Position numbers and translations under genes: made by a program
In this document: one piece after another, positions 14,014 to 40,496 of the stretch
How positions within the stretch are numbered: position 1 is the stretch's first letter
How the letters are laid out: each line of letters starts with the position of its first letter
Assembly (NCBI GenBank): GCA_029953675.1
Contig: JAMWBK010000001.1
Span: 930,001-994,000 of the forward strand
From: Rhodosorus marinus CCMP1338
Taxonomy: Eukaryota; Plantae; Rhodophyta
Length of the DNA: 64,000 nucleotides
Direction of reading: 5' to 3'
Notes under the pieces: generated by a model
The model's database searches: none
What the model saw: only the letters and a program-made list of their open reading frames with translations
Told to the model about the DNA's origin: nothing

Positions 14014-17000
14014 ATGGGTTTCAGCGGAAGAGGAAACGGATTCCGCGGCGGTTGGAGGGGGGTACGACGTGGAGGAGGTCGAGGACGAGGACGAGGACGA
14101 GGATATGGCTTCAAATCAAGCAGGAGGTTGGCACAGCCGAGCTGGGGCTCTGACGAGCCAGCGCAGACTGCAAACGCTGACCCGGAAATCTCGACAACCG
14201 AGAGAAAGACGCTTGACAGGAGAAAAGACATGGGTGAGCGAGATGGAATGCAGGTTCTTGGAAACTCCTCTCTTTCTACGCTTTTCTGAATGTATGTGTT
14301 TTCGCTTGGAAAGATTTCCGAGATTCAAATAGCGGAGTTGAAGCGCTGTCCACCGGATCGAAACCGCGTTTGGGATGGTTGTATAATATGGCGTCGGTGA
14401 CGGTTCTGGATTCCATCTCCGAAAAACTTGTTCAGGTAGCTACTAGCAAACCCGAAACCAGAATTCTGCAAGCATCGCTAAGTCTTGATTATTGTAAATA
14501 GGGAGCGGATTTGTTCTTTATTGGTTCGGATGGAGTAGACTTCAGAGCTACTGCAGTGATGCGACCCTACCTCTACCTCTCCGCGCTTGAGGACAAAGTG
14601 GGGGATCTGGAGACTTCTCTTCTCAAGCTGTACCCTGAACTGGTGCGGGAAGCTGAAGCGAATTTTTCCTTTGGATTCTGAGTACGAACTGATGAAATGC
14701 TTGACAACTGACTACCTTTCTGTGATAGATCGCTTGCTGTACAGTGACATACCTGGAAGACCTTGATGCTCCAAACCACTTATCAATGAGGGTTAGCAAC
14801 CTGGACCATCCGCAGCTGACCCTACTTCTGGCTTATTAGTTTTCGATCGTTTCTTGAATTCTGCAGGAAGGAAGATCCTACTTGAAAGTGGAGAGTTGGA
14901 CTATGAAAGAAACCAACGACCTCAGGCAAATGTTGTTACCTTTCCAACGTAAAAATCAAGCGAACAAGAAGAAACTCGGCGTTGCAGACGCTGCTGAGCT
15001 TGAGTATAGAGCTGGTCTAGATCTTCTGGATGATATTAGGGAATACGACGTGTCCCCATTGAACCGGATTGCAATTGACATGAATCTAAGGGCAGGTCAC
15101 TGGTACAGAGTTGATCCGGATGGAATGTCAGGTGTGTTCGTGCACCTTCGCACGAGCTGCTTGCCACGACCGTGTTTTAACCAAAACTGTCGGTTACAAA
15201 CTTCAAACCAGGAGCGAGCACGGATGTCACCGACAGTGAGGGCCAACAAGAGAAGAAGGCCGAGTACAGATCTGTGCATCTGGAACGAGTGGAAGAAATC
15301 CTGGAAAGAGCTACACCAACAGTGCTCGCGTACGATATTGAGTGTACTAAGCAGCCTCTTCGTTTTCCTGATGCTGACGAAGGGGATATGGTACAGTCCT
15401 CATTCAGCCAAGCGCGTTTCTCGGGTTGTTCGAGCTGACCACTGTCCTGTAATTGCAGGTGATGATGATTTCGTGGATGATTGACGGGCACGGCTTCCTT
15501 GGTGTCAACCGCGAGGTTGTTTCCGCTGATATAGTGGCTTTCTCGTATACGCCAAAGCCCGAGGTATGTTGCTTGTCAACAAGACATTGACGTGGTTTTC
15601 CAGGTCTCTAATTTCGATTTGACTCGCATTTGGTGAATCTAATAATTGCAGTTTCCCGGCGACTTCGTTATTTTCAACGAACCCGATGAGAAGGCCCTTC
15701 TCGAGCGCTTCTTTGAACAATACAGAGCAAACCGACCGAGAGTGGTCGTTACGTACAACGGCGATAACTTTGACTTTCCGTTCATTGAAAAAAGGGCCGA
15801 AGCTAACGGCCTTGACATGTACAACGAGATTGGTTTTAAGCAAACTTCTCAAATGCAGAGCGTAGAGTATCGATCGAGGACTGCCGTTCATCTTGACTGC
15901 CTCTATTGGGTGAACAGAGACTCCTACCTCCCGCAGGGCTCAAGAGGCCTAAAAGCTGTTACGAAAGCGTTGTTAGGATATGATCCATTAGAACTTGACC
16001 CCGAGGAAATGACTCCAGCTGCGAAATCTAGACCACATCTACTGGCTTCGTACTCTGTATCTGATGCTGTGTGCACGTACTACTTGTACATGAAATATGT
16101 ACACCCGTTCGTATTCTCGCTCTGCACGATTCTGCCCCTGAATCCGGACGACGTGCTACGCAAAGGCTCCGGAACCCTCTGCGAGCTTCTGCTAATGAGT
16201 GAAGCAAAGAAAAAGTTGATCGTTGCGCCGAACAAGCACGAAGACTATTCCGTTAAACACACACCAGATGGGCATATGCTCGAAAACGAGACCTACATTG
16301 GAGGACACGTTGAAGCGCTTCAGTCCGGCATTTTTCGTAGTGATATCCCGAGTAAGATTCTTACAGTATCGGTAGGCAAAAGACGGGCTACTGATGTGCT
16401 GTTTTTTTTTCACCACTCCAACCCTACAGTGAAATTCCGCATTGACACAACGGCAATTGAAGAACTTGAAAAGAAGATTGATTCGGTTTTGAAATTTGCA
16501 GTCGAAGCTGAGGCAAAGAAAACCCTCGAAGAGATTATAAACTATGAGGAACTAAAGGTAGGCTATATGCAAGCTGACTTCGGATTGTTCTGCACTCTGA
16601 CAAAACTGGCGCTTGTTTCTTTGTTTGCGTAGGAGAACATCTTAAATCAGCTCGCGGAACTTAAGAAGAATACATGCTTGACGGAGAATCCTCTTATTTA
16701 TCATCTTGATGTAGGGGCAATGTATCCTAACATTATATTGACTAACCGGCTTCAACCGCACGCTATTGTTGATAGCACAACATGTGCAGCATGCGACTTC
16801 AACGGTGACTCAGATTGTCAGAGGTACATGAAGTGGACGTGGCGCGGGGAACACTACACAGCCTCGCGTGGGGAGGTTGAGATGCTGAAACGATCTGGGC
16901 CAGGTCCTGTGGTGGAAGACATTTCAGACCCTTCGTTCATGAAAAGGTTGAAAGACTACTCAAGGAAGAATTATCGGAGAATTACTGACACTCGAATTCA

Positions 17001-20000
17001 GGAGCGTGTTGCAACTGTCTGCCAACGAGAGAACTCGTTTTACGTGGACACAGTCCGTGCGTTTCGAGACAGAAGGTACGACCTTAAGCAGATGTTAAAG
17101 CGATGGAAGAAAAAGGTGCGAGAAGCAAGGGAGAGAGGTGATGAAGCTCAGATTTTGGAGGCCGAGAGTATGATTGTGCTTTATGACAGTTTGCAGCTCG
17201 CACACAAGTGCATCCTCAATTCCTTCTATGGGTACGTGATGCGGCGAGGTGCAAGGTGGTATTCAATGGAAATGGCAGGCGTTGTAACACAGACGGGATC
17301 CCACATTATTCGAGGCGCTCGGCAGTTCATTGAACGCATTGGTGTGCCACTCGAACTGGATACTGATGGAATCTGGTGCACGCTGCCGAAGTCGTTCCCC
17401 GAGAACTTCGTCTTCAAAACGAAGGAAGGGCAAACGCATCAAATGAGCTTCATCTGCTCAGTATTCAACCAGGAGGTCCACCAGAACTTCAGCAACCACC
17501 AATACCAATATCTAAACAACAAGCAGGCGCCGTCTTCCTACGAGGTATCAACGGAATGCTCGATTTTCTTCGAAGTCGATGGGCCTTACAAGGCGATGAT
17601 CCTTCCAGCATCAAAGGAGGAGAATAAACAGCTAAAAAAGCGATATGCAGTTTTCAACGATGCCGGAAAACTCGTCGAGCTAAAAGGCTTTGAAATAAAG
17701 AGAAGGGGGGAGCTGAAACTTGTTAAGGTCTTCCAAGGCGACGTTTTCAATAAGTTCTTGGACGGCAGTTCCTTGGAGGAGTGCTACGATGCGGTGGCCT
17801 CAGTTGCTAATAGATACTTGGATGTCCTGGAGGAGGAAGGGAATATGTACGACGACGAATCCCTGATCGCTCTGCTCATGGAGCAAAACAATATGAGCAG
17901 GAGTTTGGCAGAGTACATAACGGACGGACAAAAGAGCTTAGCAATTACAACCGCAAAGAGATTGGCGGAACTGCTTGGCGAGCAGGTGGTTAGGGACAAG
18001 CTGACTTGCAAGTACATAGTCTGCAAGAAACCCGAGGGTGTTCAGGTGAGAAAAAACTTTTGAAAGATTCTCAGAGCCGCGTTTGGTTTTATGGCCCTAA
18101 GCGTCTGTCCTTTTCTTCTATTATTTGTTCAGGTTACCGAGAGGGCCATACCAATTCAAGTTTTCGGCACTGATGCAAAGATTAGAAAAGAGTTCCTCCG
18201 TCGCTGGACAAAGGAAACGGAGGATTCCGCTTTAGAACTGCGAGCTCTGATTGACTGGGAGTACTATGCGGGTCGGCTTGTCTCCTCGATACAGAAAATT
18301 ATTTGCATCCCCGCCGCTCTGCAAGAGGTAATACTCGCAAACTTGCAGGAGTCATTGCGAATACCTCCCACATGGGCTAGTTCTGAGATTCGAGACTTCC
18401 TGCAACGTTTTTTTTCCGTCAGCTGTCTAATCCAGTTCCGAGAATAGACCTTCCGGACTGGCTCGCGAAGAAGGTCGCTGAGATGAGAGATCCACGGAAG
18501 CAGAAATCCATTTCCTCCTTTCTCGTGCAGAAATCGACATTCGACGAATTTGATGATGTCAAGCATCTACCGAACAAGAGTAGCCGAGCATGTCCCGACA
18601 TGGAGGACATTACGAATCGTGCTAAGTCCACTGACAAGATAGCCAAGGCGAGACTGAAAACTGAAATTTCTGCTTCGCGTGGACACGGCCTGGCCGGTAA
18701 GTGAAAGGATTTCGTGCTTGCCATGCTTGCACCGCGAGGAGCTGGCTGTCCAATTTTTAACCACAGTGCTCAAATCCGCAGATGAGAATGAGCAGCCAGA
18801 TCTGAAGGATGGCTACGTATCATGGCTTAGAAGAATGAGACGAAAATGGAAACTGAGTAGGAAAAAGAAGGAGTTGGAAAAGCTGAAGAAAAAACGCTCA
18901 ACAATCGAGAGCGATGATGATGACGACGTCTCTGGGGGCAAGAATATGCTGAGTCGACGGCGAAGAGCTAGGGGTATTGGAAACTATTTCGAAGAACACA
19001 ATACGCGGCCAAGAGTGAGCTTGCTGAAGAACACGTGGGAGGTATTTTCGCTCGTGAAAACGAAGGGTAGAGGCAGGTATCAACTCTGGATACGCCCACT
19101 CTCATCACGTAAGGAAAGCAGGAAGCGTTGTAAGATCTTATCAAGACTTACAAAGGTCTGACTGTGCTAAACTTTTAGGCTTCGATGACGGCCCATCCGA
19201 GTTTTATGCAATCCCGTTGAGAGTCCCTCGCTCCGTGTACGTGAACTCACGACTGCCAAAGGATGAGCACCTTGGAAAGGAAGTAAAAGGTTATGTCCTT
19301 CCTAGAGGTCAGCACAGGTAAGCGTCTTAAAAGGAAGTCTATTAAAGCCAGGGTTTCTCAAGGTTGACTGTGCTCAAATATGTCAACTTCGCGCCTTGCG
19401 CAGCTTGCACCTGTACAGGGTTGGGGTAGATGAAGCTCATGAAGGTATGAGTACTGGCGGTCAGGTATCGAGCGAAGGCACGGACATTGAAGGAGTATAT
19501 GAAACAAAAACTCCCGAGGATTTCAACGCGCTTCTTCGGGTTGGCTGCCTGTGCAAGCCTAAAAACTTGCCTCAAGGGGGGAGGAGTGCCCTTCTCAGCA
19601 GGGGACTATGTATTGACGACCTGGAACCCGTCGACGTTCGAAGTCGCTCCCAGTACTTGGCACAAGGAGAGGACAAGGTTACTGCCTTCCTCTATGTGGC
19701 GGACTCTATGGACGGCTCTCAACGTTTGCTTTTTGGACTCCTTACGCCGTTGATAGAACAGGGCCTTGTAGTGAGTGTGTCACAGTCTCACAAGTCCCCC
19801 CCTTTGGATGCCGCAAGGATTTGGAAATCCATTGGGTCTGAGAAGGACGCCAACTTTTCCAATGAGTTTCAGTTCACTGTAGCAAACGAGCGGTCAGTGA
19901 AAGCGGCTGGAAAACTGGTTCATCAGCGACTTGAAGATTTGCTGATGGATGGTCGCTTCGCGAGGAGGACCATTCTCTGCGTGCAGAGCTCAATTGGATA

Positions 20001-31137: not shown

Positions 31138-33587
31138 ATGGATGCTTTTATCAGGAATGTGAGACTTTTTGGACATGGTAGGAGGCTCTGTAGCTCGCTG
31201 AGCAAGCGATTAGCGGACGGGAAAAGCGTTGTTGGAGTGTATGGAGGTGATCACGCTGTTTACCATGCGCTTGCTGAGGCCAAGACGGGTAGAACCTTAG
31301 CTAGTCTGAAGGGAAGTGCGGGGACTGGTGGTATCAAGGAATGGAAAGTCCCTGCACTTGTGAAACACATCAGAAAGAAGGCTGTTCAGACTAGATGGAA
31401 CGATATCGTGTCTCTTGACCCGCACGGGCTTAGCTCTCCACGTCCGACTATTGCGGCTACTATGGCGCGCATGGAAATCCCGGAACTCAGAGACTCGCTC
31501 ATTCCCGATGGGAGAGTCGTGAATGCAGACCAGAGCGTCAATTGCATCAAGGTCGCAATTGAGCCCGTTTGGGATATTCCGAAACTCGCGAAGCGCCTAC
31601 AGGTTGACGAAGCTGTGATGAGGTCACATTTGGCGGAATGGACGCTAATCGACCGCTTGGACGATCCGGAGTACGATATATTCCTCCCAAGCATCGGCGG
31701 GACGACTGTGTACCTATTTGGAGATCTGCAAGCGATTGTGGATTCAAAGGGCAAAATCGCAGCTCGACCGCACGACGAGTGTAACGGGTCTGACGTGTTT
31801 GGAACGGATATTTGCACCTGTCGTCCATACCTTGTCTACGCCATCCAAGGAGCAATCGAAAGAGCCCAAAAGGGAGGCTGTGGTATCATCGCGTACTTCA
31901 GGAAGGAAGGAAGAGCCTTCGGAGAGGTTACAAAGTTCAGGGTGTACAACCTTCGTCGGTATCAAGAAGGTGGTGACCGTCCAGACATGTACTTCAAGAT
32001 GACGGAGAAGATTGCCGGTTTAGTAGATGCGAGGGCTCAGGAACTGATGCCAGACGTGTTCCACTGGCTCGGAGTCAAGCAGATCGATGAACTCCTGTCT
32101 ATGAGCAAGGACAAGCATGAAGCAATAGTTGGAGCAGGTATCAACGTAGTAGACCGCGTCTCGCTGCCCGAGGAAATGGTCCCCAAGGGAGCATATGTTG
32201 AGATCTCCGCGAAGATCTCCTCTGGGTACAACAACTTTCAACCGCGGCAGACGGAGGAAGATAAGAACCGACGGGAGCTTTTCACTTTGGAATGTGTCCG
32301 CGAGCGGTGTAACAAGATCTTGTCTCTGGGCTTGGACAGGGAGCTGAAGCACTTCCATGTCGACATGAAGCGCCTTGAGCCTACAGTGTCCAGGGTTGTG
32401 CATACTATGAAGCGCAAATATCCTGATTTTGATATTCCTACACACTCTAGGTGGCGGCAATTTGAAGCCGGCGATGTTGACAGGATCTCGGAGCTCAACC
32501 AGAGATGGACGCGCTATAATGTGGACTCCCTCGAGCGAACCAGGCGCCTGGTGGACCTCACTGCTATTTCCGTTCTCCTGGATGCTGGAGCCGGAAAGGA
32601 CTGGCACTACACCGATCATCATGGCGGGGAAGAGGTGTTCAAACGCTCAGAAGGGTTGGCGATCGCATCACTAGACATGTTTCAAGCTTGCAACTTCAGC
32701 TCCGATGCTGGGTCTCCTCAGGTAGACGCGGCGGCGTTACGTAAGCTAAGCGAGGACGACCTGGCGCTTGCATTCCAAATTCGTCCAGACAACCCTCTCA
32801 TTGGGCTTTCGGGGAGGTACGAGATGCTACAGAGGCTTGCCAAAGCAATGGAAGCAAATCCCCAGATCTTTGACAACGGGGAAGGAGTTTTTAGACCGGG
32901 TAATCTTGTGGACTACGTGCTCCGTGAGGCCCACGGTCAGAGCAGTAGTGTCTCGATCCGCGTGTTGTGGCAAGCCATCATGGACGGTCTTCAAGACGTT
33001 TTCCCGGATTCTTCGGGGCTCCACATCGGAGACGCGTACAGGCACTACGCGCTCCACAAGAAAGACAGTGCTCCTTTCCACGACGTTGTTCCCTTCCATA
33101 AGCTTGCACAGTGGCTGTCCTACTCGCTCGCGGAGCCATTTGACCAGCTGGGCATTCGATTCGTCGACTCATGGCTATTGACCGGTAAGCGTTTGACACT
33201 AAAAGCCACAGCGCCTGTGCGTTCTGTGGACACTTATCTCACAGATCGTCTATTGTTCCATATCCTCGATTAGGCCTCGCTGAATACCGCAATGGCGGGC
33301 TCCTCGTGGACATGGGAATGCTCAAGCCGAAACGACCCGAGGAGGTTTTTGGAAAGAAGCTGAAAGTCACAGATGAGCGGGTTGTTGAGTGGCGTGCACT
33401 AACCATCAGCCTGCTTGATAAACTCGCTGTGGCTATCTGGGACCGCCTGGGAGAATCTGAGCAGACGATGCCCATGGGTAGGATCCTGGAAGGAGGCACA
33501 TGGCGTGCAGGAAGAGAAATTGCTGCCGAGAAGAGACCAGGAGGACTTCCACCGATCGAGATTGACAGCACTGGTGACGTCTTTTGA
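31138..33587 (+). CDS. Fusion of URC1/Urg1 (GTP cyclohydrolase II-like) and URC4/Urg3 (DUF1688) uracil-catabolism proteins; 786 aa; intron 33185-33273
   Basis: N-half: IVSLDPHG, RPTIA, AIEPVW, FLPSIGGTTVYLFGD, RPHDECNGSDVFGTDICTCRPYL, YFRKEGRAFGEVTKFRVYN, KISSGY. C-half: PTHSRWRQFEAG, ISVLLDAGAG, RSEGLAIAS, FHKLAQWLSYS, LTG|LAEYRNGGLLVD, VEWRALT, ILEGGTWRAGR, IDSTGDVF*. The junction is one open exon. Confidence 0.9.
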
Positions 33588-33795: not shown

Positions 33796-36157
33796 TTATG
33801 TATGCTTGCCCGCTTTGCGAGGCCCACGTCTTTTTCTGGCAATTCCTTTGCGATGTCTGTATCTGTCCCTACTGGTCTCATGGCCGCGATTCTTTCTGCC
33901 CACATTGTCGAGTGGATCTCGATCGTCCGAGCGCTTGCTGTTTGATCGAGATTTTCTTCTCACGGGCTTGAATTTGGAGAGCAATTTTGAGATACAAGAA
34001 AAAAAATTCAGCAACGCAAAGCAACTTGCGACAGCGTCGTCCTCATTCTGAGCAGCTTCTTACCGCTCGTGACTGCGCCTTCTCGCGGAGCGCCGCTGGC
34101 AGTAGGTAGGCTGGGAGGTCGCCCAGATGCGGTTGCACTTGCGGTGTGAGTGCCTTGTCGTGTTTCAAAGCCTGCTCAAACAAGAAACCGGTTCAGTAAA
34201 GGTTCTTGCTCAGGGCCAGGGAAGGCTTGGTTCCTCAACTGTACGTGGCTTACCTCAAAATCCTTTGGGTTGCTCTCGAAAAAGTCCTGCAACTTTTCCG
34301 ACGCTAGCATTTCGCGCTTCACGTCTTTTAGTCTTGCATCCAGAACATGTGCTCTCGTGATACTTCGTAGCGAGTCTTCCACTCGATATCGAAGCGACTC
34401 CACTTGGTCCATTCTCATCACGAGCTTCTCTAGCCGGAGGCCTTGTTGCGCACAAATCTTTTCAAGCGATTCCTGTTCTTTGCCCTCGATGGGTAGGGAC
34501 AGGACCGTGCCAGTGCGCCCGGCCCTGGCTGTCCTACCAGCTCGATGCATGTATGAATTCGAATGGAACGGTAGACCAAAATTAAGCACCGTTGAAACCT
34601 CGTGAAAGTCTATCCCTCGAGACAAACCAAACTCATTCTCTCTACCACCGGAATCTCGTTTCGGCTTCCTTTTGTTCGGCTTATCCTCAGATCTCGATAC
34701 AATCAAATCCTCATCACAAGCGACGAGGACATCGAAAACTCCAGCGTTGAACTGTTCAACGCAATGAATCCTCGAGTTTAACGGTAATTCACCGTTCAAA
34801 GTTGCCGACCTTGTCGTTGCAAAGGAACAAGAAGCCTGTTGTTAGATCCGGACACATTATCGGGTACAAGCGAAGCTAGCTTTCTTACCGAATTGAGAAC
34901 TTGTCCAGGAAGAGTTTTAGACGGAAAGCCGTGTCAATTTCATTCACGAAAATGAGAGTTTTCCCCGTTAGAACTTGCAACCTCAGCAGCGCGTAGGTCA
35001 CCAAGTACTTGTCTTGAGTCGTTGTAAGCGTCGTAATGTTGTGGGTAACTAGACCAGAGGACTTTCCAACATCGTCCATAGTAATCTGCAATTAAGAACC
35101 ATCGTACTTGAGCATCTTAAAACAGGACTGACTGCCTAATAATAGGCCGTTATTCATTACCTTTATCACCATCGGCTTACGAAGCACGAGTTTCTTCAGC
35201 TCATCGAGATCTTCTCCAAGAGAGGCGCTCACTAGCATTGACTGTGAAGAAGGGGGTATTGACGCAATTGAGCGCCTTGTGTCTTCGTCATATCTTTCAC
35301 GCAGAAAAATTGAAAGAATCTAGCAATGAGTGCACGTAAACACGTTCTATGTTGTTTTGGTCCGTAGCTTCTCAAAGGTCGTTGAGCTCTTAGGTTTCAA
35401 ACTTACCCATAGCTGAGAACGAGGTCGGCCTCATCAACTACCACAAACTGGACTTGGTCAAATTGTGCAGCGCTGTTGTCCAAACGTTCTGCAAGAGCAG
35501 ATGGAGTAGCAACCAGTAGATCCGCATTCGGGACTGAGCCATCGCCAGACTTTCGAACGAGCGTTCGGACGCTCAGTTGTGGGGCATACTTGACAAGCTT
35601 TCGGGATACACCGGCAACCTGGTAGCATAGCTCTCGCGTGGGAACTAGAATAACCGCTCGGACGATTCCATCTGAAGTTCAGAGGTGAAAGTGGGTCAGG
35701 CGCTGTAAACGGAATAAAACCAGCGCTTACGAAACAGCTTACCGCCAAAAGCATCTCTTGAGACGAGCGAGTTCAGAATGGGAAGCAAAAACGCTGCTGT
35801 TTTCCCGGAACCCGTCGGTGCTGCAGCAAGCACATCCCTGCCCATCAAAGCCGCGGGAATCATAGAAGCTTGCACTGGGGTGGGTTTCTCAAACCCCACA
35901 GATTTGCAAGCTCTCAAAATTCTTGCGTCCAATCCCATTTCCTCAAAGGAACCCACTGGTTCAGCGACCGCCGGCTGTTCATGTTGAGTTTGTTCCTCTT
36001 CCGCTGCCTCCTCATTTTCGGAGGGGGTTTTAGATTTTCTCTTCTTCTTCATTACCTTCAAACTCTTCTTTGAGTTCTTCTTCAATTTATCCTTTTCCCC
36101 CATTCTTCTCACCTGCTCACCTACCTCCCTCGAACCCCCTTCTCCATTTCGGCCCAT
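33796..36157 (-). CDS. DDX56: DEAD-box RNA helicase DDX56/DBP9; multi-exon
   Basis: [23 protein letters not shown], manually read [12 protein letters not shown] (35460-35405), [43 protein letters not shown]|ALKHDK, and a basic C-terminus with DPL. Confidence 0.92.
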
Positions 36158-36811: not shown

Positions 36812-38059
36812 ATGATCACGAGGAGGTACCGACTCGTTTCCGTTTCTCAGCGGTTGATTTGGGCTTCCCAGCGGTTTTTAAAGTGTTCTGCAGCGAGGGA
36901 ACGTAACCGTTTCTCACCTCATGAGGACTATTCTGTCTTGCAGGTTCCCAGAGGGAACGAGTGGGGTTTACGTGTTCCTAGAGTTGCGGAAGATAGTACG
37001 ATTTCGGAATTACGGGAGTTCGCAGGAGCGCAGTCTGACAAGGGCTTGGAGCGAGCCTATGACCTATCAAACATAGCAATTCTCGATGGAATCGATGGTT
37101 CTCCAGTAGGATCAGCCAGCCTCGCGAGGGCTGCGATGTTCATGACCGCCTTTGGGGAATTGGGCAAGGTCCGGTACCTGATATCTGAGCTGCAGAGAGC
37201 TGACAAAGCTGAACTGCTGAATGGTGAATTCTTCAAGGCCATATTGAATGGTGTTTCAAAGATTTCCCTTCCATCCGACATATTCGAGTTCTTCTGCACA
37301 GACATCTGCACGGTTTATTCAAAAGTGCCAGAGGCGTTGTACTGTACGATGATAACGATTCTCATTGCGCATGATGCAATTCAGGAGCTCAGAGTCGTGC
37401 TGTCTGAGTTTGAGGAAGCTCACCCTTCCCCTAGTGAGGTAGGCCACCAGCACATGATGCAAGCATACCTCCACCTCAAGCAGGGCGCGGCGGCGTGGCG
37501 GATTTTCGAAGCTCTGAAAGCGCGCGGCCTACCCCTGCATGTTGACGTCCTCAAGGTCGCAATGCACGTGGCAGCTATGGAACATGACCTAGCAAAGGCT
37601 GAGGAGGTCTACAGTGTGTATAATCACGTGCTGAGCCTCGGGAAGTCCGCCGTTGAAGCTTATATTATGCTTCTCATCAAGAACAACCAGCTCGAACACG
37701 CACTGCTCGTCTACAACAACGAGAAGCGCAGGAAACACGTCAGCGACGAAGCACTGCATCAGCTCTTCGCAGCCCTTGTTGAAGCGGATCGAGAGGACCT
37801 GGCTATGCAGATGTTGTCCCGAGAGCAACTGGAGGATGACACCAAACTCGTATTCGTACAGACCGTCATACTGGGATGTGTGCGGAAGAAGAAATTGCGT
37901 GAGGCTCTTCGACTGATGAGCTTTGCGGACCAGTTTACGAACACTCACCTGTGGAATTCCGTTGTTGATACACTGCGGTCGAGTGGAGATTTAAAGACCT
38001 CCGACAAACTAGAGGACGCCCTTGGCAAATTCCAGACAGGGCTGTGGGACAAAGGCTAA
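36812..38059 (+). CDS. Pentatricopeptide-repeat-like helical-repeat protein, probably mitochondrial; intronless
   Basis: 415-aa ORF with an Arg/Ser-rich N-terminus and degenerate ~35-aa repeats (e.g. PSEVGHQHMMQAYLHLKQGAAAWRIFEALKARGLP, AVEAYIMLLIKNNQLEHALLVY). Confidence 0.65.
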   Translation: MITRRYRLVSVSQRLIWASQRFLKCSAARERNRFSPHEDYSVLQVPRGNEWGLRVPRVAEDSTISELREFAGAQSDKGLERAYDLSNIAILDGIDGSPVGSASLARAAMFMTAFGELGKVRYLISELQRADKAELLNGEFFKAILNGVSKISLPSDIFEFFCTDICTVYSKVPEALYCTMITILIAHDAIQELRVVLSEFEEAHPSPSEVGHQHMMQAYLHLKQGAAAWRIFEALKARGLPLHVDVLKVAMHVAAMEHDLAKAEEVYSVYNHVLSLGKSAVEAYIMLLIKNNQLEHALLVYNNEKRRKHVSDEALHQLFAALVEADREDLAMQMLSREQLEDDTKLVFVQTVILGCVRKKKLREALRLMSFADQFTNTHLWNSVVDTLRSSGDLKTSDKLEDALGKFQTGLWDKG

Positions 38060-38070
38060 GCTGGGTTGAA

Positions 38071-40496
38071 TTATTGCGCCGCTAGTACAGCATTCCTCAC
38101 TTCCTGGACTGCTTCAGCAAGAGCATCGTCATCCTGCGTGGTCGACGCAGCGTCCGCGTGCTTAAGACTCTCAACGACAAGGTCGTGCAGTCTGAACAGG
38201 CTTTCGGCTGATCTACCCCTGGCACTCTGCCGTAGCTCCTGAACAAGAAACGGAACTGCCCTTGCCGGAATTTTGAGTACTGCACCTCCTTTGCTTCTCG
38301 CGAAGACGAGAACCTGATAGAATTCGATACCATTTCAGTGTCAGAACGCGTTACTCGATCGACGAGGTTTGATGATCGGCAGAATTTTGGAACCGTCGAA
38401 ATTTCTGGCGAGAGGCGCTCACCGATGACAAAAGTAGAACATTGAGCGGCTCATGTTCTGGAAGAAGTCTCTCTTCGACCTCTGATCTCAGCGTTTGAGA
38501 AAGAGCTTTCTCTTTCTTTTTGTCAAGGAGTGTTCTGGGCGGGAGGCAGAGCTCGGCGCCGTGGTCATCGTATGCCTGCAAAAACTCATGCGTTGTCGAC
38601 GCCTTCACGAAGGCGCGGACGTGCTTTTGCGCCTTTGGAGGAAAATTCCCAATTGGTGGGACTTCGCTTTCCCCAGAAAAGTACTGAAGCGAAATTTTCC
38701 TTGCATCCGAGCAGTAGGTTTCCATCAGATGCTCATCTAGCATCGTGCGGAGACCCTCATCCGAGATAGCCTCCATGGCCTTCAAATGAACTTCAATTTT
38801 CGGCAAAACGGCAGCCAGCTCCCTTTCAAACAGTTTTGCCTTCTCCGCTTTTTCTTTTGCTAGTTTTTCGCGGGCCTGAGCCTCTGCTGCTGAATAGATT
38901 GAACCCAATTCGGAGTAGAGCACGGCAATCAGAGCCTCTACAAACGCGCTGTCCTCCGCACTTTCGCCAAGATGATCCTTTTCTAGCATGATCATCAAGT
39001 CGACTTTTGCGTTCAGTATCTCCACAGCCTCCTCTTCGGTGGGAGTCCGCACGGAGCTCGTCGCCAAGCCTCGAGAAGTTTTCGAGTCCTCGTTCTTGTT
39101 CTTCTTTCTCTTTGATTTCGTCTTCTTAGTTGCAATTTCCACAAGCTCCTGCTGCGGTATGTCTGCCTGCGGCACTGCCGTCACCACTTCAAGAGCCTTG
39201 GTCTCCGAGTCCCGAACGAAGACCTCCCAGCACCTTTCCTTGAGCTCCGGGCTCACAATGAATCGATCCTGGGCAACCACCGCCTCGTCGCCTTGGAGGG
39301 CTGCCTGCAACACCAGGGCACAATCCTCAGGGTCGATTGTCGCCGGAAGAAGAGGAACTGAATCTAGCCAAGTCTTTGAGCTCAAAGCAGCGCCAATGGC
39401 ATCCCGCAACTGGTCTACTTGTCCCTTCGAGATAACCATTTTGGTGAGGAGAAGGTCGTTCGGCATTTTCGACGCGACATACTTCTTCGGATCTACTACG
39501 GAGAATTGTCGTAAGCGATCGAGCTCCACGTACTGATTTGTCCTGAAGAAGTTATCAATCGCCTCGTCTCTTGTTTTTTCAAACGTGCTTGGGGTAAACG
39601 CCGCGCGTTCCCCACGACCACGGAGGCTTCCGTTCACGCTCCCTGCGGCTATCAACTCTTCCAATGCATCATTAACAATCTTGGTCCGGATGCCAAGTAC
39701 TTTTGCCACATCGCCGACGGAGATTGGAGTTGCCGCACCTCTTAACATGCCGCAAACTCGCGCCTGAGCAGTCCAGAACACGGATATCTCTCATCAGACG
39801 CAAATTCGTGGTGGAAATCCAGGATTCCAGTGTAGGTTTCTCACCTTCGACCTGGCAATATGCGACTCAGTATAGAGGCTTCCTCCTTCGAGATATCCCT
39901 TGATATAAATACCGACCCTCTTCTCAAGCATGGACCGAACAGTATCAATCGGGAGGTTGTACTTTGTCGCAATATCCGCGAGGGAGAGGATCCCATCGCC
40001 AGTTTCAGAGAGAACATCCGCGATCTCTTCCGTGCATAAGTCAAAGTAGTCGTCTGTAATGACATCCCCTTGAATCCTCTGAATCAAAACAGATGGGACG
40101 AGGCGAGGCGGACAAATAAGTCTTCATTGGATAATGCGCGAGAGAGTCCGGCTAATAACTTGGGACAATGAAAATCCTCACTCTTGCAGAATCTGCCCTC
40201 TCCTCAAAATAACCTTTCAGCTCAACCTCGACGTGATGGAGATCGACACCAATCAAGGCGGCGGCTTCGACGATATTAAGTCGACCTCCATGTTTCATGA
40301 CCTCGTCGCCTATTTCAGTTCGGACTCGCTCTCTCGTGAGATACTCCCTGCCAGATACAGTGAACACGACGTCGACTCTGCCCGCCTCCAGCAGCTTGGA
40401 AACCAGCTCAACGCAATTGGTCTCCGACATCCTCGTGGTCGTTCCCTCGAGCTGTACCGCCGCCAGCTGTCTCTGAAGTTCAAGAATCTCGTCCAT
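38071..40496 (-). CDS. UFL1: E3 UFM1-protein ligase 1; multi-exon
   Basis: MDEILELQRQLAAVQ, RMSETNCVELVSKL, FTVSGREYLT, GGRLNIVE, and winged-helix repeats (LSLADIATKYNLP, YVELDRL). Last exon read manually, ending ...VRNAVLAAQ* at 38073-38071. Confidence 0.9.

Follow-up and report, generated by a model that had tools for sequence, protein, structure and literature searches.

Are two enzymes of uracil catabolism that are encoded by separate genes in yeasts joined in one polypeptide in a red alga, and what would such a protein do? The question arises from a stretch of 64,000 nucleotides of Rhodosorus marinus CCMP1338 (NCBI GenBank assembly GCA_029953675.1, contig JAMWBK010000001.1, positions 930,001 to 994,000 of the forward strand), which we refer to as the window. 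An initial annotation of this window described a spliced open reading frame (ORF) in which a URC1-type domain is followed by a URC4-type domain (DUF1688). We confirmed this gene and estimate with a probability of about 0.7 that it encodes a bifunctional enzyme, in which a single chain catalyses both of the steps that are specific to the URC route of uracil catabolism.

The URC pathway has been called a fungal and bacterial trait whose middle steps are uncharacterised. URC1 and URC6 convert uracil into ribosylurea and 3-hydroxypropionate by uncharacterised steps, and URC4 converts ribosylurea into urea, a step for which the evidence is genetic and comes from Lachancea kluyveri (PMC7530994). The bacterial enzyme UrcA hydrolyses UTP in two steps (PMC9499338). 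The fusion family that we describe here is widespread in protists and also includes one red alga and some giant viruses, and it shows URC1 and URC4 working together as one unit.

One reading frame for two domains

The coding sequence of 2361 nt lies on the forward strand in two exons (window positions 31138..33184 and 33274..33587) and has TAA TAG directly 5' of its ATG at 31138. The spliced product of 786 residues ends in IDSTGDVF and is 100% identical (786/786) to the NCBI entry 'hypothetical protein NDN08_005287 [Rhodosorus marinus]' (P0001); the public gene model and that of the initial annotation are the same. The window is thus nuclear DNA of a red alga. The protein was modelled with AlphaFold2, with a mean predicted local distance difference test score (pLDDT) of 81.8. 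The gene has the following features:

31138..33184, + strand: exon 1, codons 1-682 and the first base of codon 683
33185..33273, + strand: intron of 89 nt, GT..AG, phase 1, the sole intron of the gene
33274..33587, + strand: exon 2, the rest of codon 683 to F786, with the TGA stop at 33585-33587
31138..31221, + strand: N-terminal 28 residues (MDAFIRNVRLFGHGRRLCSSLSKRLADG), Arg/Ser/Leu-rich, matched by no domain model, pLDDT < 50
31219..32259, + strand: putative URC1/UrcA-type UTP-cyclohydrolase half, residues 28-374 (Pfam, PDB sequence match, Foldseek)
31765..31821, + strand: zinc-binding motif R210-P-H-D-E-C215 ... C226-T-C228 (residues 210-228), of the form C-x10-C-x-C
32230..32277, + strand: inter-domain linker, about residues 365-380 (NNFQPRQTEEDKNRRE), the variable columns between AKISxGY and L..VRERC
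32278..33584, + strand: DUF1688/URC4 half, residues 381-786, interrupted by the intron (Pfam, AlphaFold2, Foldseek)
33100-33102 (K655), 33282-33287 (E686-Y687) and 33582-33584 (F786), + strand: putative active-site residues

Exon 1 spans the URC1-like half and the linker in full and DUF1688 to about three quarters, and on its own it forms a 711-residue ORF without a break that runs to 33273. The domain junction thus falls within a single exon, as had been claimed. Exon 2 supplies the last quarter of this domain and with it E686-Y687, W759 and F786 at the C-terminus. The intron sits just 5' of the invariant LAEYRN motif with the putative catalytic pair E686-Y687, and 24/24 aligned homologues, transcriptome ORFs included, are contiguous over this site (...LTG|LAEYRNGG...). 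Retention of the intron would lead to a stop at TAG 33271-33273 and to the loss of E686-Y687 and the C-terminus. Due to the position of the intron two codons ahead of LAEYRN, the retained form would have an intact URC1 half and a dead URC4 half.

The closest relative among the matches listed (P0002, from MMETSP) has 78% identity and is encoded by an uninterrupted ORF of 792 residues on a 4.9-kb transcriptome contig. It aligns collinearly through the domain junction as well as the intron site, which supports the single reading frame of the initial annotation. The linker is variable in sequence, comprises 12-15 residues in the homologues and is predicted to be disordered (pLDDT < 50 at residues 362-371). 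The fusion ensures 1:1 co-expression and the proximity of two successive activities. The initial annotation had gone further and read direct channelling of the intermediate from the fusion; a true substrate tunnel is not indicated, and channelling would be pure inference.

At the N-terminus, the sequences of the closest clade (P0002-P0009) are likewise R/S/A-rich, and those of the remaining fused clades are Lys-rich. Residues 1-28 are possibly an organelle presequence, either mitochondrial or plastid.

The N-terminal half resembles UTP cyclohydrolases

In the N-terminal half, Pfam detects GTP_CH_N (PF12471; residues 20-166, 2e-17, profile positions 35-191 of 193) and GTP_cyclohydro2 (PF00925; residues 198-341, 6e-14). 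When comparing residues 29-364 to known structures, we find 44-48% identity to the bacterial UTP cyclohydrolase (7EJ3/7EEV, 1e-86), whereas the match to E. coli RibA (2BZ0) reaches merely 8e-12 and pairs residues 204-349 with 2BZ0 residues 43-177. The fold search gives the same ranking: with Foldseek, the AlphaFold2 model matches UTP cyclohydrolase at 1e-23 (44% identity) vs 1e-5 for RibA. The zinc motif that the initial annotation had pointed out is present and aligns to the zinc-ligand region of RibA, and its residues R210, H212, D213, C215, C226 and C228 are unchanged in 24 fused homologues. By homology, the N-terminal half is a putative zinc-dependent UTP cyclohydrolase of the URC1/UrcA type.

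With Urc1p of L. kluyveri, Urg1 of Schizosaccharomyces pombe and bacterial UrcA (7EEV, 7EJ3), the Rhodosorus protein shares GTP_CH_N, the GTP-cyclohydrolase-II core and the C-x10-C-x-C zinc site. It differs from UrcA in that it lacks the N-terminal ~50 residues of the bacterial protein, has a presequence-like extension and is covalently linked to URC4. Both modules had initially been described as complete. This is correct for DUF1688, which is matched from end to end, but not for GTP_CH_N, where profile positions 1-34 are absent, as they are in every fused homologue.

The C-terminal half resembles the glycosylase Qng1

Residues 381-786 match Pfam DUF1688 (PF07958) at 1.6e-138 and 462.5 bits (cut-off 25), covering profile positions 2-420 of 420; the assignment of both halves by the initial annotation is thereby upheld. 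The half is modelled at pLDDT ~90. Its likeness to Urc4p of L. kluyveri, Urg3 of S. pombe and PF07958 extends over the full length, and the invariant residues are those of the stand-alone bacterial proteins. The C-terminal ...G.VF occurs in all fused proteins and in all bacterial URC4 proteins examined. In Rhodosorus, URC4 is a domain within a larger protein, whereas the known proteins stand alone with ~400-450 residues.

Foldseek detected a similarity of the DUF1688 half to the Qng1 structures 7U07, 7U5A, 7UK3 and 7UGK (E ~1e-8, probability 1.0, template modelling (TM) score (target) 0.70-0.80). Furthermore, weak matches to Pfam Q_salvage (PF10343) were found in 14/26 DUF1688 members (best 4e-6), and any other family turned up in at most one of these proteins. 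PDB sequence searches with the DUF1688 half and with the 26-member DUF1688 profile gave no meaningful match, and the relation to Qng1 surfaced solely via the fold search and the weak Pfam matches. DUF1688 thus appears to be a distant relative of Qng1/Q_salvage and not a member of that family. The paper on Qng1 (PMC9881137) does not mention DUF1688 or URC4, and the relationship was not found in the openly searchable literature; the predicted Qng1-like fold of the DUF1688/URC4 half (helix-hairpin-helix glycosylase-like) is new here.

Qng1 (DUF2419) is a queuosine-5'-monophosphate N-glycosylase, whose active site holds the ribose by K199 (orientation), Y232 (stacking) and W302 (contact to the ring oxygen), with D231 acting at C1'. 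The free carboxylate after the invariant C-terminal Y323 is essential, and the enzyme is inactivated by C-terminal tags (PMC9881137). Judged by spacing and fold match, the DUF1688 invariants K655, E686-Y687, W759 and terminal F786 are collinear with Qng1 K199, D231-Y232, W302 and Y323, at offsets of 455-463. The likeness to Qng1 (7U07, 7UK3, 7UGK) comprises the overall fold and, going by spacing, a set of putative counterparts, namely a collinear Lys, an acidic-Tyr pair, a Trp and a conserved aromatic C-terminal residue. In contrast, the identity is 15-17%, Glu stands in place of the catalytic Asp, the position of the base-recognition Asp298 is unconserved, and the presumed leaving group is urea and not queuine.

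The structural model suggests that URC4 could be an N-glycosidase that releases urea and needs a free C-terminus. Tentatively, and with odds that we place just short of even, we propose that DUF1688/URC4 is an unrecognised Qng1-type branch that would convert ribosylurea 5'-phosphate into urea and ribose 5-phosphate with its free C-terminal carboxylate in the active site. URC4 would then come last in every URC1-URC4 fusion seen because its active site would need a free C-terminus. URC4 thereby gains a concrete and testable mechanism.

The fusion is common in protists and occurs on giant-virus contigs

Searching 5.8 billion proteins, we found both halves in all of the at least 120 clusters listed, with 45-78% identity to the window protein and lengths of 660-850 residues. 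More than 130 homologues, complete transcriptome ORFs included, are each encoded in a single frame and have their junction in the same place. Many of the fused homologues are complete ORFs from transcriptome assemblies, and thus a single mRNA covers both halves in those organisms. Within the Rhizaria, the fusion is found in Plasmodiophora brassicae, Paulinella chromatophora, P. micropora, Mataza sp., Lapot gusevi and Cercozoa sp. M6MM. Further named carriers are the ciliate Euplotes focardii, the centrohelid Pterocystis sp. and Ancoracysta twista.

In two contigs of giant-virus metagenome-assembled genomes from IMG/VR, the fusion is an intron-less ORF of ~750 residues. The virus and metagenome ORFs are:

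L083:2565-4826, + strand: intron-less fusion ORF
L082:3178-5442, + strand: intron-less fusion ORF
L085:6001-8148, + strand: fusion ORF

The first of these giant-virus contigs (L083) also codes for an EsV-1-7 repeat protein, DUF2589 proteins and a GT2 glycosyltransferase. A further carrier of the fusion is a 363-kb 'seawater metagenome' contig (GCA_902498965.1), where MutS and Erv1/Alr genes are present as well. A uracil-to-urea module may thus exist in giant viruses, and a mis-binning of short contigs is also possible.

The fusion is the standard architecture of a large protist and giant-virus family that has gone unremarked in public databases. The rarity that the initial annotation had implied did not hold: the architecture is common, and the trio of domains is already present in the precomputed Pfam annotations of matching database entries. 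It is, however, documented in no paper that we found, as the fusion is unmentioned in the openly searchable literature, outside of which lie Andersen et al. 2008 and Zhang et al. 2021. Seen for the window by itself, the result is modest: the gene already has an entry as a hypothetical protein, and many database proteins share its architecture.

Separate genes and the origin of the fusion

That URC1 and URC4 are separate genes elsewhere, as initially stated, is supported by the literature for L. kluyveri and for S. pombe, where urg1 and urg3 are distinct genes within a cluster (PMC2174524, PMC3869809). Stand-alone DUF1688 proteins are found in Trichoderma, a chytrid and the alga Heterosigma. 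To cover bacteria, 185,579 species genomes were scanned, which resulted in 530 relatives. The best 80 of these 530 were analysed at the level of ORFs and come from cyanobacteria, Bdellovibrionota, SAR324, Myxococcota, Hyphomicrobiales and Sessilibacter. Separate ORFs for a URC1-type protein and DUF1688 are present in 78 of the 80 loci, in all but one of them on the same strand with URC1 upstream; in the other two loci, just one half was seen. A fused ORF was found in none of the 80 loci. Apparent bacterial fusions from tblastn (residues 29-786 within ~2.3 kb) were rejected as a read-through of a single in-frame stop.

The two bacterial genes often abut, being parted by only a stop codon followed by an ATG in the same frame. 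Such junctions are located at the following positions and at further bacterial loci:

L004:7104-7110: stop codon, then ATG
L011:7110-7116: stop codon, then ATG
L015:7140-7150: stop codon, then ATG

With both genes in the same frame and a single stop before the ATG, one point mutation would make a fusion. The excess of same-frame pairs among the top matches is an artefact of the tblastn ranking. In two of the bacterial loci examined, the pair is followed by upp, which encodes uracil phosphoribosyltransferase (UPRTase), and a uridine-kinase gene (udk). In Microcoleus (L033-L063), a protein of 360 residues with an adenylate/guanylate-cyclase domain is encoded between URC1 and DUF1688 (L037:4883-5965, + strand), and a UPRTase gene is located ~1.3 kb downstream. 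The bacterial urcA-DUF1688-upp-udk clusters thus resemble the Rhodosorus gene in having two activities in the same order. They differ in that they encode two polypeptides (78/80 loci), whereas the eukaryotic fused gene lies away from other pathway genes, according to the scan of the window.

An all-against-all search of 1.84 billion representatives yielded 690 proteins at <= 1e-30, and the best 150 of these 690 are mostly stand-alone URC4 or URC1. Among 275 proteins, no fusion with DUF1688 first was found. Two candidates for this order with a C-terminal URC1 were rejected, as P0129 (810 residues) is a URC1-URC1 tandem and P0174 (816 residues) is a UPRTase-URC1 (URC6-URC1) fusion; the latter constitutes a second Rosetta-stone link. 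A URC1-DUF1688 fusion of 1031 residues, P0130 (L084:5001-8096), is located on a bacterial-looking 228-kb contig. Its gene adjoins the gene of an 846-residue protein with a GTP_cyclohydro2 domain.

We inferred neighbour-joining trees for each half and evaluated them by the best split of the unrooted tree and 40 bootstraps; a test based on the most recent common ancestor in midpoint-rooted trees was uninformative. All fused sequences form one clade in the tree of the URC1 half (bootstrap 36/40), and 66/69 do so in the tree of the URC4 half (bootstrap 28/40). The 'solo' sequences within the fused clade are fragments that start or end inside the other half, and nothing else. With moderate neighbour-joining bootstrap support, the trees suggest mainly one fusion event. 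Two points weaken this reading: P0130, P0132 and P0133 do not group with the main URC4 clade, which makes more than one fusion event possible, and the trees are neighbour-joining only and contain metagenomic representatives. A junction at one common position and a linker of few residues are compatible with a simple loss of the stop codon between neighbouring genes. The fusion would have arisen, mainly once, from an ancestral adjacent pair of URC1 followed by URC4, and the fused gene is today distributed over many protist lineages and some giant viruses.

Proposed function and alternative explanations

In the mechanism that we propose, the N-terminal half would hydrolytically open and trim the uracil ring of a uridine nucleotide, which is UTP in the solved bacterial enzyme. 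The ring carbons would end up as 3-hydroxypropionate, and a ribosyl-urea compound would remain. The C-terminal Qng1-like N-glycosidase would then cut the bond between ribose and urea, by which urea would be freed for nitrogen assimilation. The substrate of this second step is most likely a 5'-phosphate. If roles are transferred from Qng1 by collinearity, that of the carboxylate at C1' would fall to E686 and the positioning of the ribose to K655 and Y687, and the active site would be closed by the free carboxylate that follows F786 at the C-terminus. If true, the fused enzyme constitutes a two-step route from UTP to urea in protists, a red alga and giant viruses, which fills in uncharacterised chemistry of the URC pathway and takes this pathway far past fungi and bacteria. 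Its annotation would be better given as 'UTP cyclohydrolase / ribosylurea glycosidase' than as 'GTP cyclohydrolase II', and the fused proteins are a convenient single-polypeptide target for URC4 biochemistry.

Several observations weigh against a bifunctional URC enzyme of this kind. The NCBIfam equivalog of the URC1 type (NF005536/PRK07198) scores 366.8 bits, which is under its cut-off of 403 bits; this shortfall is explained by ~48 missing N-terminal model positions, as the match covers 49-407 of 419. In line with this, the first ~50 residues of bacterial UrcA are absent from the fused proteins. For the C-terminal half, the Q_salvage scores of 16-18 bits are below the gathering threshold of 25, the putative nucleophile is Glu where Qng1 has Asp, and the residue equivalences to Qng1 come from spacing and the fold match, without a residue-level structural alignment. 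The predicted TM score of the whole model is 0.56, which makes the inter-domain geometry unreliable, and the phosphorylation state of the intermediate is presumed. Moreover, no homologue of UPRTase, urease/urea amidolyase or URC8 was found among the 10 large ORFs of the window that were scanned with Pfam. To our knowledge, neither DUF1688 proteins nor the fusions have been characterised biochemically.

The alternative that survives best is that the protein is bifunctional and acts on another pyrimidine nucleotide, e.g. a modified or damaged uridine nucleotide, in housekeeping or detoxification and not in the scavenging of uracil nitrogen. The missing URC6, urea-amidolyase and URC8 genes among the scanned ORFs are compatible with such a role, and so are the presequence-like N-terminus, which hints at an organelle, and the carriers, which include predatory and parasitic protists and giant viruses with no obvious need for uracil nitrogen. 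We nevertheless consider it unlikely, given the strong, orthology-level similarity to enzymes whose link to uracil and UTP comes from genetics and biochemistry, and given the bacterial operons with upp and udk, by whose products uracil and uridine enter the pathway.

Considerably less likely is that the halves act separately, following proteolysis in the linker or internal initiation, or that the gene model wrongly merges two genes. A short, variable linker with predicted disorder would be suited to cleavage; however, the ORF of exon 1 contains neither a stop codon nor a plausible intergenic sequence over its 711 residues, the NCBI gene model is identical, and the single frame and the junction position are shared by the more than 130 homologues.

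Finally, a GTP cyclohydrolase II of the riboflavin pathway with an unrelated C-terminal domain is hardly credible: homologues carry the name 'GTP cyclohydrolase II' in JGI and UniRef and the Pfam GTP_cyclohydro2 and RibA models do match, but the RibA profile models score far under their cut-offs, the match to 7EJ3/7EEV is far stronger than that to RibA, GTP_CH_N is typical of the URC1 type, and the bacterial relatives lie in operons with DUF1688, upp and udk.

Genomic neighbourhood

The following neighbouring genes were recognised in the window:

15646-18063, + strand: DNA polymerase epsilon catalytic subunit, several ORFs
34176-34799, - strand: DEAD-box helicase gene, convergent, 3' of the fused gene
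36812-38059, + strand: pentatricopeptide repeat (PPR) protein (Pfam)
38351-39781, - strand: E3 UFM1 ligase fragment (Pfam)

The polymerase epsilon gene is split over several ORFs and thus contains introns. This gene, the PPR protein and the UFM1 ligase are unrelated to pyrimidine or urea metabolism. A convergent DEAD-box helicase is also located 3' of the fused ORF in the closest relative (L081:2716-4020, - strand), which shows that this neighbour is a case of conserved micro-synteny. As the convergent helicase is present on the transcriptome contig of P0002, the 3' ends overlap in the transcript assembly.

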